From Macrostomum lignano (taxonomy: Eukaryota): a DNA stretch of 64,000 nt. Position numbers and translations under genes: made by a program. The notes under the pieces were generated by a model. That model ran no database searches, was not told where the DNA came from, and saw only the letters and a list, made by a program, of their open reading frames with translations. The stretch covers positions 310,001 through 374,000 of the forward strand of contig NIVC01000245.1 in assembly GCA_002269645.1 (NCBI GenBank), read 5' to 3'. This document shows positions 21,101-36,100 of this stretch, piece after piece (position 1 is the first letter of the stretch; every line of letters starts with the position of its first letter).

Positions 21101-24100
21101 CAACTACTAGCTTTGACTCACTGGGCGATCATTCCACCGCTGGCGCAGCGGCCAGTGCAAGGAGAACCGTGTCCAGCGCCTCCCAGTTCATTGAAGACGA
21201 CATCGAAAGTTATCCGCTGTACAGTTCCGACACTGAAAGGCAGCGAAGGCGGCTGCAACAGAGGCTGTCGTTGCGGATGCAGCGGCGCAGAGGAAACGAT
21301 GGATCAGGAGAAGGAGGAGGTTAGCTGCCAATTACTGCCTGTGTTCTGCGGCTGCTGCTGCTGCCGCTGCTCCACAATAAAAAAGCTAACGAATGAGCTT
21401 TGCCGCTTATTTGCCGTTCTGCAACCATTCCGCTAAGTCTAAGATAAAGCATTTCTATGGAAACGCATGCGTGTAGGGCACTAAAATACGCTCCGAAATT
21501 GTTCAAAATTTATAAGTGTGTAACATGGCTGCACTATTTGTCTTGGCTTCCTGTTTAAGAATCCTAGCTATTAATACCTAAAAAAATTTTCTTAGGAAAA
21601 AGTATATTTGCACGAACAATATTTAACGGTGGAAGTCGCATTTTTGAAATAATAAAGTAGAACTGGCCACATTTACATGCCAGCGCATTAATGTATTCGA
21701 AATCTGACATTCAAATATTACAACCTTCTCGCATTCCGCCCCCACTCCATCCTGCCCATTCCATCTCTATCGACACGCACCAACTCCATTACCAAAAATC
21801 AACCCTCTCGAACCAATCTCCGAAAACGCCTCGGTGAACATTCAATCTGCAGCCGGTCAGAAGCGTCCAACTCCGCCAGCCAGCTTGCCGCTCACGCCAG
21901 CCAAAGCTGCCGCTGCCAACATCGAGCCTGCCAAAGTCGACGCCGATTCATCCGATGCTGCTACCGATGCCGAACGCCGACGCTCTTTGAACTCGTTAAT
22001 GATTCGCGCGATGGAGCACGAGGACAGTCTCCGTTCGGAGATGCGCAGTCTGAGTATTGATGAAGCGCTAAACGCGCCGGACGCAACGCCGCAGGTTGAA
22101 GAGAAGTCAATCAGCGAGGAAATGTCAAGGCCGATATCGCCGATGGAAACGGTCGACTCCGAGATGGCCACCCCGGTGCAGGATGTTGCTCCAAGCTTTG
22201 AATCTGCCAACACAGCCGCCTCAGCAGCCGCCGAATTCTCTAGTCAGGAGGCACTTGAGGAAGCGTTTGAAAAAGCCCGAGAGCTCCCCTCAGCGCAGTC
22301 GTCTTCCTACGCTTCAGCCACAGAAGAAGAAGACGACGATGAGGCTGCCGGGCGAAGCTGGACGGAGCCGCAGCTCCAGTCATCCAGCCTGTTTCACTCC
22401 GGCGGCATCCGGCCGGAGGAGCTCGTGTCACCCACGAAAGAAGAAACTGCAGAGCCCGGACGTCGTTTCTCGGCGCTTGTATCCTCTGAATACACCTACC
22501 GTAGGATGGAGGAGAAGCTGGACAGTCCAGTGCAGAGTCCAGTGGACGCTTACAAGAAGTTTCCTCCTCAGCACCAGCAACCTGCTGCGCCGGAGCAGTC
22601 ACCTCAGCCTGCCCCATCTCAAGAGGATGAAAATTCGGCATTCGATGCCAGACTACAACGAGCCGAAGAGCTGATGGCTGAGGCAGAGTGCGTCATTGTC
22701 AACCGCTACACTGGTATTGACGAAGATATTGAACAGGTTGGCCTTGAGATTGATCGCGTCATACCTGACAGCATGCTGGTGTCAACTACAACAGCAGCCT
22801 CAAAGTCTCCGGATCGTCTGGAACCTGATTGGAGTCGGCAGCTGAGCGAACCCGAGGCTGCTGTGCCAGAGGAAGAGGCTGAAGGTGTCGCCATAGAAAC
22901 CGAGACGCAAGTTCTAGCTGTGAAATTACATAAGCATAAAGATACACTCTCTGGTTCTGCGGAGTACGAACATTTCGCTGAGCGTGAGGAGACCCAAGCT
23001 CCTGCTGAGCCTGAGGAGACTGAAGCTCGTGGTGAGCCTCAAGAGACTGAAGCTCATGCAGAGCCTGAGGAGACTGAAGCTCGTGCTAAGCCTCAAGAGA
23101 TTGAAGCTCGTGCTGAGCAAGAAGAGACTGAAGATCGCGCAGAGCCTGAGGAGACTGAAGCTCATGAAGAGCCTGAGGAGACTGAAGCTCTTGCTGAGCC
23201 TGAGGAGACTGAAGCTCGTGCTAAGCCTCAAGAGACTGAAGCTCATGCAGAGCCTGAGGAGACTGAAGCTCGTGCTGAGCCTGAGGAGACTGAAGCTCGT
23301 GAAGAGCCTGAGGAGACTGAAGCTCGTGCTGAGCCTGAGGAGACTGAAGCTCGTGCTAAGCCTCAAGAGACTGAAGCTCGTGGTGAGCCTGAGGAGACTG
23401 AAGCTCGTGCTAAGCCTGAGGAGACTGAAGCTCGTGCTGAGCCTGAGGAGACTGAAGCTCATGCAGAGCCTGAGGAGACTGAAGCTCGTGCTGAGCCTGA
23501 GGAGACTAAAGCTCGTGCTAAGCCTCAAGAGACTGAAGCTCATGCAGAGCCTGAGGAGACTGAAGCTCGTGCTAAGCCTCAAGAGACTGAAGCTCGTGCT
23601 GAGCCTGAAGACACTAAATCTCGTGCTGAGCCTCAAGAGCCTGAAGCTCGTGCTAAGCCTCAAGAGACCGAAGCTCGTGCTGAGCCTGAGGAGACTGAAG
23701 CTCGTGCTGAGCTAGAAGAGCCTGAAGCTCGTGCTGAGCCTCAAGAGATTGAAGCTCGTGCTGAGCAAGAAGAGACTGAAGCTCGTGCTGAGCCTGAGGA
23801 GACTGAAGCTCGCGCTGAGCCAAAAGAGCCTGAAGCTCGTGCTGAGCCTGAGGAGACTGAAGCTCGTGCTAAGCCTCAAGAGACTGAAGCTCATGATGAG
23901 CCTGAGGAGACTGAAGCTCGTGATGAGCCTGAGGAGCCTGAAGCTCGCGCTGAGCCAGAAGACACTAAATCTCGTGCTGAGCCTGAAGAGACCGAAGCTC
24001 GTGCTGAGCCTCAAGAGACTAAAGCTCGTGCTGAGCCTCAAGAGCCTGAAGCTCGTGTAGAACTAGATGAAACACCAGGTACAATTCAGTCTGAGAAGAC

Positions 24101-33100: not shown

Positions 33101-36100
33101 CCGTTACGAAGATGATTTTGATGCCGAAGGCGAAGATGACGAAAGACCAGCGGGTCGTGAAGGCTCGCTACAACAGGAACAGGAGGCAGCAAGTGATGAA
33201 GAAGCTGCTGTACCACAATCGGACCAGAATATTTTTCGTCACCAAACTAAACCAGCTGTCGCTGAGCCTGAGGCTTGTATTCTACTCGGTCCGGACGCCT
33301 TTATACTTGTTGAGCAGTCTGATGAGGCTGCTTCTGCTATTGTTAACCCTGCGGTTTCTGCTGGCCCGAGCGAGCTGCCAGAATACGACGAGGAGATTCC
33401 TGGCGAATCCGCTCAGAGTCCTGAATCATTTGATTCCGTCATCAAGCGGTCTCTGCCGGCGCTGGCCAATCTCAGCCTGGCGGCGTCAACGGCGGAGGAG
33501 CCCAGAAACCTGGACAAGTCGGTTGGGACGAGTCCTGTCTCTCCTGGACTGGCTAGGGGCACTTCTGCGATGAGCGGCACCAACTCCGCTTCGCCTGACG
33601 AGTGCCAGTTTCAGTTGGAGGATCCGGAGGGCCAGTTGGAAGCGCAACGCCTAGACACTGGAACCATGGAAGCGTCTGTGGTTACGCTTGAGGACTCCGA
33701 GACCAGCCAGCCGCCAATGGCTCATTCCTCCGAACTGCCACGGGACGCGTCTTCGCTTAGCCAGGACGCCTCCAAGTCTAGCGAAGTTCTTAGCTCCGGC
33801 ATCAGTGTAACCGACAACCGGTTTGGCCCTTCGGCAACTGCTGATGACATTCCCAGCATTGTAGGACAAGATGACAGCGGCTTTATACTGCTAACTCGAG
33901 ATGACGCCGCTTCAGATATTGACTTCGAGAGCGGCGGAGAAGCTGAAGAAGAAACGGAAGTTGCTCGCAGAATATTTGATGACGCAACGGATGTGTCAAC
34001 TTCTCTGGTTAGTGACGTTGCCTCCACGCTAGCTGGACAGGACGACGATACGGTGCAGAACTCAGAATGTGAGGAAGAGACGGCCGATGCGGATGATGCA
34101 AGAGTTTTTTTAGAAGAAGCACAACGACGTTCAACCCTATCTTCATCAACCACATCGGGTGGACCAAAAAGCCCTACAATGTCTGGTGAGGCGTTCGAGG
34201 AATTGGAGGTGCCGTCGGATCAGAGCGACGAAGAAGCGGCTCGTCAGTTGGCTTCTCGTGATTTGAGCTCCGCTGCGGATGCCGTCGAGTCGGAGGAATT
34301 CGAGCGCACAGCAAAGGAGAGGCTGGAGCGCTCGCTACAAGAGGAAGAACTAGCGTTGGATTTCGAAAAGGCTGCCGAGCAGATAATGATTAAGCAAGGC
34401 GAAAAGGATGACGTTGAAGATGAGAATGCCGAGAGCCAAGAATACGAAGGCTTTCGGACCTCGGTTGGCGACATCGACTCGGAGCTGTTCCAGGGAGCTG
34501 TGTATCAGGAAGGAGACGACTACGCTGAAGAATCAGATGAAGAAGACGACGAGGATGATGACGAGGGCGAAGAACCACTCGGCGCTTCTCCCAAAGCCGC
34601 GTACGTTTTCATGACGAATAAGGCTGTTGAACAGGTGGTCATCGATGACAATCTTCTGTCGCCAATCATGGAGTTAAAGGAAACACCGGAGAGCTCTCCA
34701 GAGCAGCGCTTGTCTCAACAACAACGACAACAGCAACAACCGCAGCCGGAGAAGCATCTCCAGCCGTCAATGCAGCAGCAGCTACAAGTGGCCAAGTCTC
34801 CACCAAAAATCGGCTTCGAAATCGAGCCGCCACTTACTGAAGAAGATGAAGAGACGCCAACAGCAGCTGGACTTTCCTCCTCGTTTGGCTCGAAAAAATC
34901 GGACCGTTTTCCGGAGATGCTTCAACAGAAGCAGGTCGACAAAAGCGAAGAATCTTACAGGCCGAGTGCGCAGCAGAAGTCTGACTCGCCTGTCGAGTCG
35001 GGCGAATCCGACTTCGAGATGATCGCCGCACCGCAAGAAGACGCGGCATCGGGCTCGCTGACCGAGTTTGAGCGGCTCGAGCGGGAGCTGGAGACAGCGG
35101 AGGAGCCTGCAGAGTCGGTAATGGAGGATGTCGAAGAAGTTGACGAGGACATTCAACAAGATGATGAAGAGGATTCTGTCGAACCAGACCAGGCCGACAG
35201 TCAGATCTATTCCGAAGCGTCTAAGATTGCTGAAGCTCTGAAAGTGCCAGAGGTTCGGTTCGAGGAAGCGGACGCTGGTAAAGACGCCGATAGTCTTGGT
35301 GAAGAGGACGAGGAGGACGAAGAGCCGGTCGCGGCCGCCGTAGCTCAGAGGCGATTCCCGCCCGGCCGGTCGAAAAAGATTGCCCCGGTGATGGAGTCGT
35401 CGATGGCGTCGTCTGTGTGCGCACCGAGTGAGGCCGACTCACTCACCGAGGAGGCCCAGCTGGCCATGAGCCGCAGTGTCGATAGCATCGATGCGGAGGC
35501 GTCCTCGACAGCAGGCGGCGATGGCAGCAGCGGCGGTGGCGGCTGGACTCTAGGCTACTCAATGAGCACCGACAAGGTCCGGGTGGTACCGGAGCCTGGC
35601 CCAGGGATGGTTAGTTCGACTGACAGCCTCGACTGGGAGACTTCAGCTGGAGCAGAGACTACGTCACCTGAGGATACTCTATAGGTACAGAGAGTCGAGA
35701 AAGAAGTCTCAAGTCCCTTCTTACTATCCCCCTGTCCGAGTCCCTTGCCCTGGAGTGGCAGCTTTAGCAGCTAGTGCATCGGGTGTCTGATGCCTCGATA
35801 GCTGCACAAGAGCTGCCAGTTTGGCTAAGTCTAACACCGCTGCTGTTGTATATAGCGAGTATTGATAAATCTGTTATTTATGTTGTCGCAATCTAACACT
35901 GTCGGTGAGTCCTAATCTTTTCCTTCACTAATTACTCACTTGAGTTTCTAGCTTGTATTTTGAGGTTAGTGCAGCACAGGGCAATCACTTACTTCATGTT
36001 TTATTTTCTGACAATTTTTTTTCTAGACGCTTTAAAACATTCTCAGAATGCTACTATACTACTGTCTGCAAGTAGTGCATTGTTAGAATCGTCAAAAACG

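Follow-up and report, generated by a model that had tools for sequence, protein, structure and literature searches.

A probable giant ankyrin exon downstream of the death domain in the flatworm Macrostomum lignano

A stretch of 64,000 nucleotides (nt) from the genome of Macrostomum lignano (assembly GCA_002269645.1, contig NIVC01000245.1, positions 310,001 to 374,000 of the forward strand; the whole stretch is referred to here as the window, and positions are counted from its first letter) contains an ankyrin gene whose coding sequence appears to continue, beyond the death domain, into a single open exon of 13.8 kilobases (kb). The evidence assembled below makes it very probable that this feature is a real, protein-coding long terminal exon of a canonical M. 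lignano ankyrin gene. It belongs to a known kind, the giant ankyrin long exon that follows the death domain, and what is new is a flatworm member. A comparative study had described ankyrin long exons in tunicates, cephalochordates, echinoderms, molluscs, annelids, arthropods and nematodes, with a text that names no flatworm (Jegla et al., 2016; PMC5135030), and a literature search on Macrostomum together with ankyrin found nothing relevant.

The most direct evidence for this exon is the extent of its reading frame. The plus-strand list of open reading frames (ORFs) contains an entry at 21834-35684 of 4,616 amino acids (aa), which lies in a frame that is open from stop to stop over 21708-35681 (4,658 codons) and is closed by a TAG codon at 35682-35684. 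Counted from the acceptor at 21861, the one used in the database annotation, the frame runs for 4,607 sense codons (13,821 nt) without a stop, so the single open exon of about 4,610 codons announced in the original prediction is borne out, whereas the remaining five frames over 21861-35681 contain 72, 785, 105, 131 and 92 stops. The same holds in the parts of the exon that are not repetitive, a 1,119-nt N-terminal and a 2,769-nt C-terminal flank (together ~3.9 kb), where the sense frame has no stops and the other frames have 8-70. The boundaries of the exon are as follows.

21861-35684, plus strand: giant terminal coding exon, with 0 stops; 21861-23030 matches aa 778-1167 of the M. lignano protein A0A1I8GX06 at 100%, and the exon is colinear with a paralogue exon at 34614-40211 of locus L002 (contig NIVC01003580.1)
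21853, plus strand: start of the giant exon from an alternative acceptor (AG at 21851-52)

The exon product (4,607 aa, 511 kDa) has an isoelectric point of 4.07 and contains 1,465 acidic versus 436 basic residues, for a net charge of -1029. Its measured composition (Glu 27%, Ala 13%, Pro 9%, Thr 9%) agrees with the earlier description of an exon rich in these four residues.

The second line of evidence is the ankyrin core that precedes the exon. In same-strand open segments, Pfam detects Ank (886-1851, E=1.7e-68) and Ank_2 (6021-6770, E=2.4e-49), then ZU5 (16847-17566, E=7.6e-23), ZU5 plus UPA (within 17440-18066) and, in the open segment 18394-19494, UPA_2 (E=1.5e-13) together with Death (E=4.1e-13). 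When the translated ZU5-UPA-death domain (DD) region was used as a query, it was 99% identical to A0A1I8GX06, a UniProt entry from M. lignano annotated as 'Death domain-containing protein', and 42-56% identical to ankyrins of flatworms, arthropods, nematodes, molluscs and vertebrates. The window gene encodes the canonical ANK-ZU5-ZU5-UPA-DD order, and the original placement of the giant exon downstream of the death domain is upheld, since the Death match falls in the exon 18424-19411 and the giant exon begins at 21861; this is the protostome-type position. The exons assigned to the core and to the region between the death domain and the giant exon are listed below, in part by comparison with PAA50710.1, a second M. 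lignano ankyrin.

3-119, plus strand: ANK-repeat exon, cut by the window start (tblastn to PAA50710.1 aa 167-205, 85% identity)
937-1839, plus strand: ANK-repeat exon with ~9 repeats (Pfam Ank; 63% identity to PAA50710.1 aa 197-494)
6096-6704, plus strand: ANK-repeat exon in the open segment 6021-6770 (Pfam Ank_2; PAA50710.1 aa 494-657)
7606-7791, plus strand: exon for the last ANK repeat and a linker (tblastn to PAA50710.1 aa 770-831)
16988-18045, plus strand: ZU5N-ZU5C-UPA exon or exons (Pfam ZU5 and UPA_2; frame change at 17500-17503)
18424-19411, plus strand: UPA and death-domain exon (Pfam UPA_2 and Death; A0A1I8GX06 aa 335-672; donor GT at 19412-13)
19789-19941, plus strand: post-DD exon (EPIEEE...PEAEPPED) with a phase-1 donor (A0A1I8GX06 and DNA; homologous exon at 22228-22320 of L002)
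20052-20117, plus strand: second post-DD exon, with a phase-1 donor (A0A1I8GX06 and DNA; 23236-23274 of L002)
20581-20702, plus strand: exon DKLFRD...FVRLP with a phase-0 donor (98% tblastn match to A0A1I8GX06 aa 736-777; donor GT at 20703-04)

Judged from these alignments, the window ankyrin is a divergent paralogue of the second M. lignano ankyrin, with a core that is 48-63% identical to it. About 113 residues of the ANK domain of PAA50710.1 (aa 657-770) have no counterpart in the window between 6096 and 7791, so that the window ankyrin may have fewer than 24 repeats, and one ANK repeat within the same interval bears a Ser/Thr-rich insertion. Because the 5' end of the gene lies outside the window, the size of the core (~1,450-1,650 aa) was taken from comparison with PAA50710.1, which leads to an estimate of ~6,100-6,400 aa, or roughly 670-700 kDa, for the giant isoform; the roughly 6,500 aa of the original prediction is plausible.

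A0A1I8GX06 also provides a connection between the core and the giant exon. This model has 1,167 aa, is incomplete at both ends, and aligns to 17039-18045, 18424-19411, 19789-19941, 20052-20117, 20581-20702 and 21861-23030; its last segment comprises 390 aa of the giant exon and then ends within the repeats, so the database annotation reaches no further than residue 390 of the 4,607-residue exon product. In its final junction, 20702|21861, a phase-0 donor (CCT|GT after 20702) is joined to the AG at 21859-60. The original prediction had proposed a different phase-matched junction, 21319|21853, and its phase arithmetic is correct, as the donor after 21319 leaves one base and an exon that starts at 21853, behind the AG at 21851-52, needs one base. 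However, the only database model uses 20702|21861, with an AG 8 nt downstream, and the 21319|21853 junction found no database support.

Further evidence on the exon comes from its paralogues. A word-indexed protein search with the C-terminal flank returned one match, PAA48154.1 (E=1.7e-19), whose cluster mate PAA50710.1 (2,938 aa) combines a full ANK-ZU5-ZU5-UPA core with a long exon homologous to that of the window; both are annotated as 'hypothetical protein', and the PAA50710.1 sequence as listed appears to be without the death-domain stretch. At the paralogue locus L002 the long exon is an intact ORF of 1,866 codons that is colinear with the window exon in its N-terminal flank (49% identity over 181 aa) and its C-terminal flank (34% over 284 aa, plus further islands), keeps the same order of motif islands, and, like the window ORF, ends just after STDSLD. 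Conserved islands include LPRDxSSLSQDxSxSS, SEASKIAxAL and SVDSI...STDSLD. A third M. lignano protein, A0A1I8JMR8, contains the C-terminal islands in the same order. It is annotated as 'ELMO domain-containing protein' and runs past the conserved STDS motif into an unrelated basic sequence, so this model is probably fused or frameshifted. In contrast to the flanks, the central arrays of the two paralogues are unrelated, as PAA50710.1 has ~17 copies of the 15-aa unit EEPSQQHLRESPVPT where the window exon has units of AEPEETEAR and ~2,700 more array residues.

Over 661 aligned positions the flanks are 39-51% identical to the paralogue long exon, and at identical residues the same codon is used in 39% of cases, versus 34% expected from independent codon choice. 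Synonymous sites are thus saturated, yet amino acids are conserved, which reflects selection on the protein sequence of the flanks; this conservation between old paralogues is the strongest evidence of selection in the giant exon. When the 923-aa C-terminal flank was compared by phmmer with all 1.84 billion representative proteins, the two matches obtained were both from M. lignano. This result agrees with the earlier proposal that the exon sequence is lineage-specific and, for the C-terminal flank, supports it at the sensitivity of phmmer and with the current sampling of flatworms; it is also in keeping with the loss of recognizable homology among long exons of different phyla described by Jegla et al. 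(2016).

Other features of the related loci were also observed. Between the post-DD exons and the 5.6-kb long exon of L002 there are two open segments (26595-29252 and 30111-33128; 886 and 1,006 codons) with T/E-rich repeats (EVTETSETDIQVCPGVTTE...) that are absent from the annotated protein and, by analogy with Drosophila Ank2, may represent further long exons. Another locus (L001, contig NIVC01004221.1) contains, at positions 1-3300, a second and nearly identical copy of the paralogue tail, which is cut by the contig end and reads the conserved C-terminal islands through three frames, implying frameshifts (or else short introns) absent from L002.

The anatomy of the tail encoded by the giant exon can be summarized as follows, using Tandem Repeats Finder (TRF), pattern searches, structure prediction and comparison with the paralogues.

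21861-22979, plus strand: non-repetitive N-terminal flank (49% identity to the paralogue over 181 aa)
22980-30212, plus strand: seven blocks of 27-nt/9-aa AEPEETEAR units, with six ~96-aa spacers between them (repeat and pattern analysis)
24171, 24816, 25812, 27132, 28047 and 29061, plus strand: starts of the spacer hydrophobic motif, with a first copy at 22911 (pattern search)
30252-30548, plus strand: diverged anchor motif followed by predicted amphipathic helix 1, at 30459-30548 (pattern search, AlphaFold)
30577-31428, plus strand: 42-nt/14-aa array of ~20 copies (TRF, 90% matches)
31905-31973, plus strand: predicted amphipathic helix 2 (AlphaFold helix 650-672 of the segment from 29958; regular-expression match)
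32020-32406, plus strand: 51/63-nt (21-aa) array of ~5-7 copies (TRF)
32610-32911, plus strand: 30-nt/10-aa array of ~9 copies, with an anchor motif before it at 32481 (TRF, pattern search)
32913-35681, plus strand: non-repetitive C-terminal flank, with short conserved islands common to three M. lignano proteins and STDSLD just before the stop (sequence comparison)

The 27-nt array was reported by TRF as 268.8 copies over 22977-30207 with 77% matches, and together with the 42-nt, 51/63-nt and 30-nt arrays it accounts for 63% of the exon, in line with the earlier description of the exon as mostly tandem repeat. In register there are 218 units of 9 aa, arranged in eight runs, with 81 different sequences at the DNA level and 53 at the peptide level. 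The earlier figure of roughly 200 diverged units was therefore right as a count, but the units are less diverged than it implied, as 87 of the 218 are exactly AEPEETEAR. The short hydrophobic motif and its variants were found at nine sites by pattern search, and a hydropathy scan added a tenth, degenerate copy (QSLPVQLIL, ~nt 31464). Each of copies 1-7 stands at the head of a block of 9-aa units, and the last copy at the head of the 10-aa array. The two diverged copies, at 30252 and ~31464, precede the 14-aa and 21-aa arrays, respectively, by a few hundred nt. The six spacers (VELDETPG...) differ at 9 of 288 nt positions, and blocks of 310-610 nt obtained by ungapped extension around them are 97.6-99.8% identical.

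Structure prediction suggests that the tail is disordered. For residues 2700-3450 of the product, AlphaFold2 gave a mean predicted local distance difference test score (pLDDT) of 36.9 over 751 residues, and the only helices longer than 5 residues were 2867-2896 and 3349-3371, with pLDDT of 50-58. Pfam was also searched with the N-terminal flank, the middle region, the C-terminal flank, one super-repeat, the candidate alternative exon described below and the paralogue exon, and no family scored above its curated cut-off.

The repeats themselves provide evidence of a different kind about selection. An estimate of the ratio of non-synonymous to synonymous change among the six spacer copies was rejected as a measure of constraint, since only nine sites differ and 7 of these 9 are non-synonymous, so that the copies speak for recent origin and not for constraint; the super-repeats are either young or homogenized. 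Of the 81 single changes that the 27-nt consensus allows, 54 are seen at least once among the units, none of the four G>T types that create a stop was seen versus five of five that do not (Fisher p about 0.008), and synonymous variants are ~2.8x more frequent per possible type than non-synonymous ones. This depletion of nonsense changes is moderate evidence of selection, as the counts are not independent events. The proposal that purifying selection maintains the frame thus needs to be recast: the argument from diverged repeats is weaker than it was put, given near-identical super-repeats whose differences are mostly non-synonymous, whereas the conservation of the flanks between old paralogues and the missing G>T stops do speak for it.

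Comparison with giant ankyrins of other animals places these properties in context. In protostomes and echinoderms the long exon lies after the death domain; across species these exons are biased toward the residues S/E/T/D/K/P (above 55% in total, with Ser plus Glu about 25%), repeat arrays occur in some species only and are not conserved, and homology of the exons is unrecognizable between phyla (Jegla et al., 2016; PMC5135030). The listed exons span 2-27.8 kb, with repeat units of 12-76 aa in 5 to >160 copies (Jegla et al., 2016, Table S4; PMC5135030). The window gene resembles them in its canonical core, in the multi-kb exon after the death domain, in an exon length of 13.8 kb that falls within their range, in having a repeat array of a kind not conserved between phyla, and in composition (Ser plus Glu 33% and the six residues 59% over the whole exon; 28% and 51% in the non-repetitive flanks alone). 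It differs from them in its 9-aa unit, which is shorter than any listed, in ~218 copies versus >160 as the largest number, and in its unusually high Ala content (13%). As far as its sequence allows a comparison, the window exon shows every sequence-level feature by which giant ankyrins were recognized in that study, and differs only in degree.

Among individual proteins, the AO13 isoform of Caenorhabditis elegans UNC-44 (unc-44f) is similar in having a very acidic terminal long exon after the death domain (14,974 bp in the worm) and short acidic S/T/E/P-rich repeat blocks that are split by a rarer second repeat, of which there are 7 copies in the worm and 6 near-identical plus 3 diverged copies in the window exon. 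The two differ in the nature of this separator, which is a ~25-residue hydrophobic, transmembrane-like segment in the worm and has a hydrophobic core of ~8 residues in the window. Membrane-spanning separators of the worm type were considered for the window exon and rejected, as no 19-residue Kyte-Doolittle window over the product exceeds 1.6 and the maximum mean, 1.43, lies outside the spacers. In local alignments with the worm A and B consensus sequences the window spacer scored below the shuffled mean, and a spacer motif common to other phyla was likewise rejected after comparison with worm, urchin, fly, horseshoe-crab and Aplysia consensus sequences (z <= 2.5, with the motif unaligned). Drosophila Ank2-L and Ank2-XL share with the window gene one or more long exons after the death domain and a large repeat array, proposed in the fly to act as an axonal molecular spacer; they differ in having 93 copies of 76-aa repeats in a 27.8-kb exon, and the match between their consensus and the window spacer is marginal (z=2.5).

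The region just upstream of the giant exon may contain a point of isoform choice. In C. elegans, an internal poly(A) site precedes the long exon of unc-44 and has to be bypassed for the neuron-specific giant isoform to be made (PMC4691892). In the window, 20786-21319 stands out by its guanine plus cytosine content (58.6%, versus 23% and 42% in the flanking sequence) and by one frame with no stops versus 5 and 7, and in-frame entry is possible from either of the phase-1 donors (19941 or 20117), as well as from 20702 via the AG at 20765-66. If the donor after 21319 is not used, the frame reads GGT TAG, with a stop at 21322-24 and an open segment of 178 codons. The features in question are listed below.

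20786-21324, plus strand: candidate alternative exon, either a cassette (donor 21319|GT to 21853) or terminal (GGT-TAG, stop 21322-24), recognized by base composition and open frame; acceptor 20766|20767 or 20785|20786
21376-21381, plus strand: AATAAA, 52 nt past the stop of the candidate terminal exon, a possible internal poly(A) signal (hexamer scan)
36158-36163, plus strand: first AATAAA after the giant ORF, 474 nt past its stop, a candidate distal poly(A) signal (hexamer scan)

Since the stop and the AATAAA at 21376 match the layout of unc-44, 20786-21324 is read, by analogy, as a candidate for the last exon of a short isoform; the 21319|21853 route is an alternative. The choice between short and giant isoforms would then probably be made upstream of the giant exon, where the candidate terminal exon (stop 21322, AATAAA 21376) would either be used or be bypassed via 20702|21861 (or 21319|21853). 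A composite protein query made of the post-DD exons, the N-terminal flank and the candidate alternative exon matched only A0A1I8GX06, which lacks the translation of 20786-21319, and no counterpart of the candidate exon was found in the paralogue locus L002.

Several observations weigh against the interpretation that a giant, functional ankyrin isoform is encoded here. Protein searches with parts of the exon (the C-terminal flank and the composite query) returned no transcript-derived protein for the giant exon, the fragmentary model A0A1I8GX06 is the only link between core and exon at this locus, and both neuronal expression and a cytoskeletal role are drawn entirely by analogy. In addition, the near identity of the super-repeats means that the assembled array length may be wrong, and a 1-nt deletion in the ZU5C/UPA exon, if real, would disrupt translation before the giant exon is reached. 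At this last site the window is without one G at ~17499/17500 (GGTCCGAAGG in place of GGTCCGGAAGG, 17495-17505), which shifts the frame within a conserved ALIGPEGG stretch relative to A0A1I8GX06 and the paralogue PAA50710.1. The missing G is treated as an assembly error, because loss of a base from a GG pair is typical of long reads and nothing else is broken in ~19 kb of coding sequence. The same deletion could instead mark the locus as a recently inactivated duplicate in the duplicated M. lignano genome, with an ORF that is intact only because little time has passed; a C-terminal flank that matches no database protein from this locus and an intact retrotransposon in an ANK intron would fit such a pseudogene. 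This is nevertheless improbable, as decay would strike the 13.8-kb ORF before the rest of the coding sequence, and the M. lignano protein A0A1I8GX06 reads through the deletion site.

The other alternatives concern the size, the gene membership and the coding nature of the exon. It is unlikely, though worth keeping in mind, that a real exon has an assembled size and repeat number that are partly artefact, with arrays expanded, collapsed or mis-joined and a true length other than 13.8 kb. The near-identical 310-610-nt blocks around the six spacers, the probable single-base error at 17499 in the same window and the three-frame tail on the related contig L001 are what such an artefact would predict, but the frame is held through 7.2 kb of arrays, all block lengths are multiples of 27 nt, and the array interiors differ among blocks and so offer anchors to an assembler. 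The long ORF is preceded, at a distance of 480 nt, by a candidate terminal exon with a poly(A) signal, which raises the question of whether the ankyrin truly ends at the stop at 21322, with the ORF belonging to a separate gene or transcript. Both A0A1I8GX06, which joins DD-side exons to the ORF, and PAA50710.1, which joins an ankyrin core to the homologous exon, make this a very remote prospect; moreover, the ORF opens at an AG acceptor without an ATG-initiated start near its 5' end, and long exons joined to ankyrin cores are known across bilaterians. Finally, the exon might be a non-coding minisatellite that is open by chance in one frame, as a second frame of the 27-nt consensus is stop-free and other frames have open stretches of up to 375 codons. 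In practice, however, that second frame is interrupted by 19 stops within the array zone and by 72 in all, versus none in the sense frame, and the non-repetitive 3.9 kb is both open and homologous to the paralogue at the protein level, so a chance opening is effectively refuted and deserves next to no credence.

If the window gene is read as a giant ankyrin, a role for the tail can be proposed. In other ankyrins the core binds membrane proteins and spectrin. The giant exon, when included, would add to this ANK/ZU5-ZU5-UPA/DD core an acidic, predicted-disordered tail of 4,607 residues. The N- and C-terminal flanks of the tail carry conserved islands of short motifs that probably bind partners, among them two isolated, predicted amphipathic helices. 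The central region consists of ten modules, each a short hydrophobic motif followed by an acidic Glu/Thr/Pro-rich repeat array, and the seven arrays of 9-aa units were probably expanded recently and homogenized by unequal crossing-over, as the boundary spacers and a few hundred nt on each side are nearly identical. Giant ankyrins, which are neuronal in other animals, connect the spectrin skeleton to microtubules in different ways: the worm protein acts through UNC-119/UNC-33, the fly protein directly, and the vertebrate proteins through EB proteins. By analogy with UNC-44, Ank2-L/XL and vertebrate AnkB/AnkG, the tail would most likely serve as a long spacer or tether between the spectrin-based membrane skeleton and microtubules in neurites.

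The predicted helices suggest a further, more speculative function. A loose regular expression for the RII-binding amphipathic helix (14-18 residues) of A-kinase anchoring proteins (AKAPs), [AVLISE]xx[AVLIF][AVLI]xx[AVLI][AVLIF]xx[AVLISE], gave 9 matches in the non-repetitive parts of the tail versus 2.3 +/- 1.5 in shuffles, the two best matches are the only predicted helices (with pLDDT of only 50-58), and a related helix occurs in the paralogue tails (FAERIVMSAIFGAAEQI, QLVMSALASAYDALE). It is conceivable, if doubtful, that these helices anchor protein kinase A, or another docking-domain protein, at the membrane skeleton, with the rapidly expanding modules setting an evolvable distance between membrane and cargo.

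The window also contains features outside the coding exons of the ankyrin gene. The intron between ANK-repeat exons contains, on the plus strand and thus oriented as the ankyrin gene, an intact ORF of 1,049 codons (2702-5848) with endonuclease (Exo_endo_phos) and reverse transcriptase (RVT_1) domains, which identify it as a retrotransposon without long terminal repeats (non-LTR), and a further open segment at 2112-3125. Within the intron between the ANK and ZU5 exons, 8569-16037 is filled with C/T-rich minisatellites (16-mer x116, 14-mer x54, 27/53-mer x54) and microsatellites ((AGAT)x205, (GACA)n), which give rise to long spurious ORFs in several frames. Downstream of the gene, an 81-codon ATG-initiated open segment without a Pfam match lies between an AG and a GT (36275-36519, plus strand), and large 45-nt and 29-nt tandem arrays occur along with further open segments that also lack a Pfam match and may be transposon remnants (43485-44325, 45001-45749 and, on the plus strand, 54308-55747).

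The broader significance of this gene lies in its phylogenetic position and in its paralogues. Giant ankyrins have been proposed to be ancestral to bilaterians (Jegla et al., 2016; PMC5135030). The flatworm locus described here and at least one paralogue with a long exon homologous to its own indicate that giant ankyrins exist in Platyhelminthes, with the exon in the protostome position after the death domain, which fits a model of single origin. Two old paralogues that keep ordered motifs around unrelated arrays also provide a natural map of the parts of a giant ankyrin tail that are constrained, and so are candidates for binding, and those that may act as free spacer. M. lignano, in which such a map could be put to use, is transparent, regenerates and is amenable to RNA interference.

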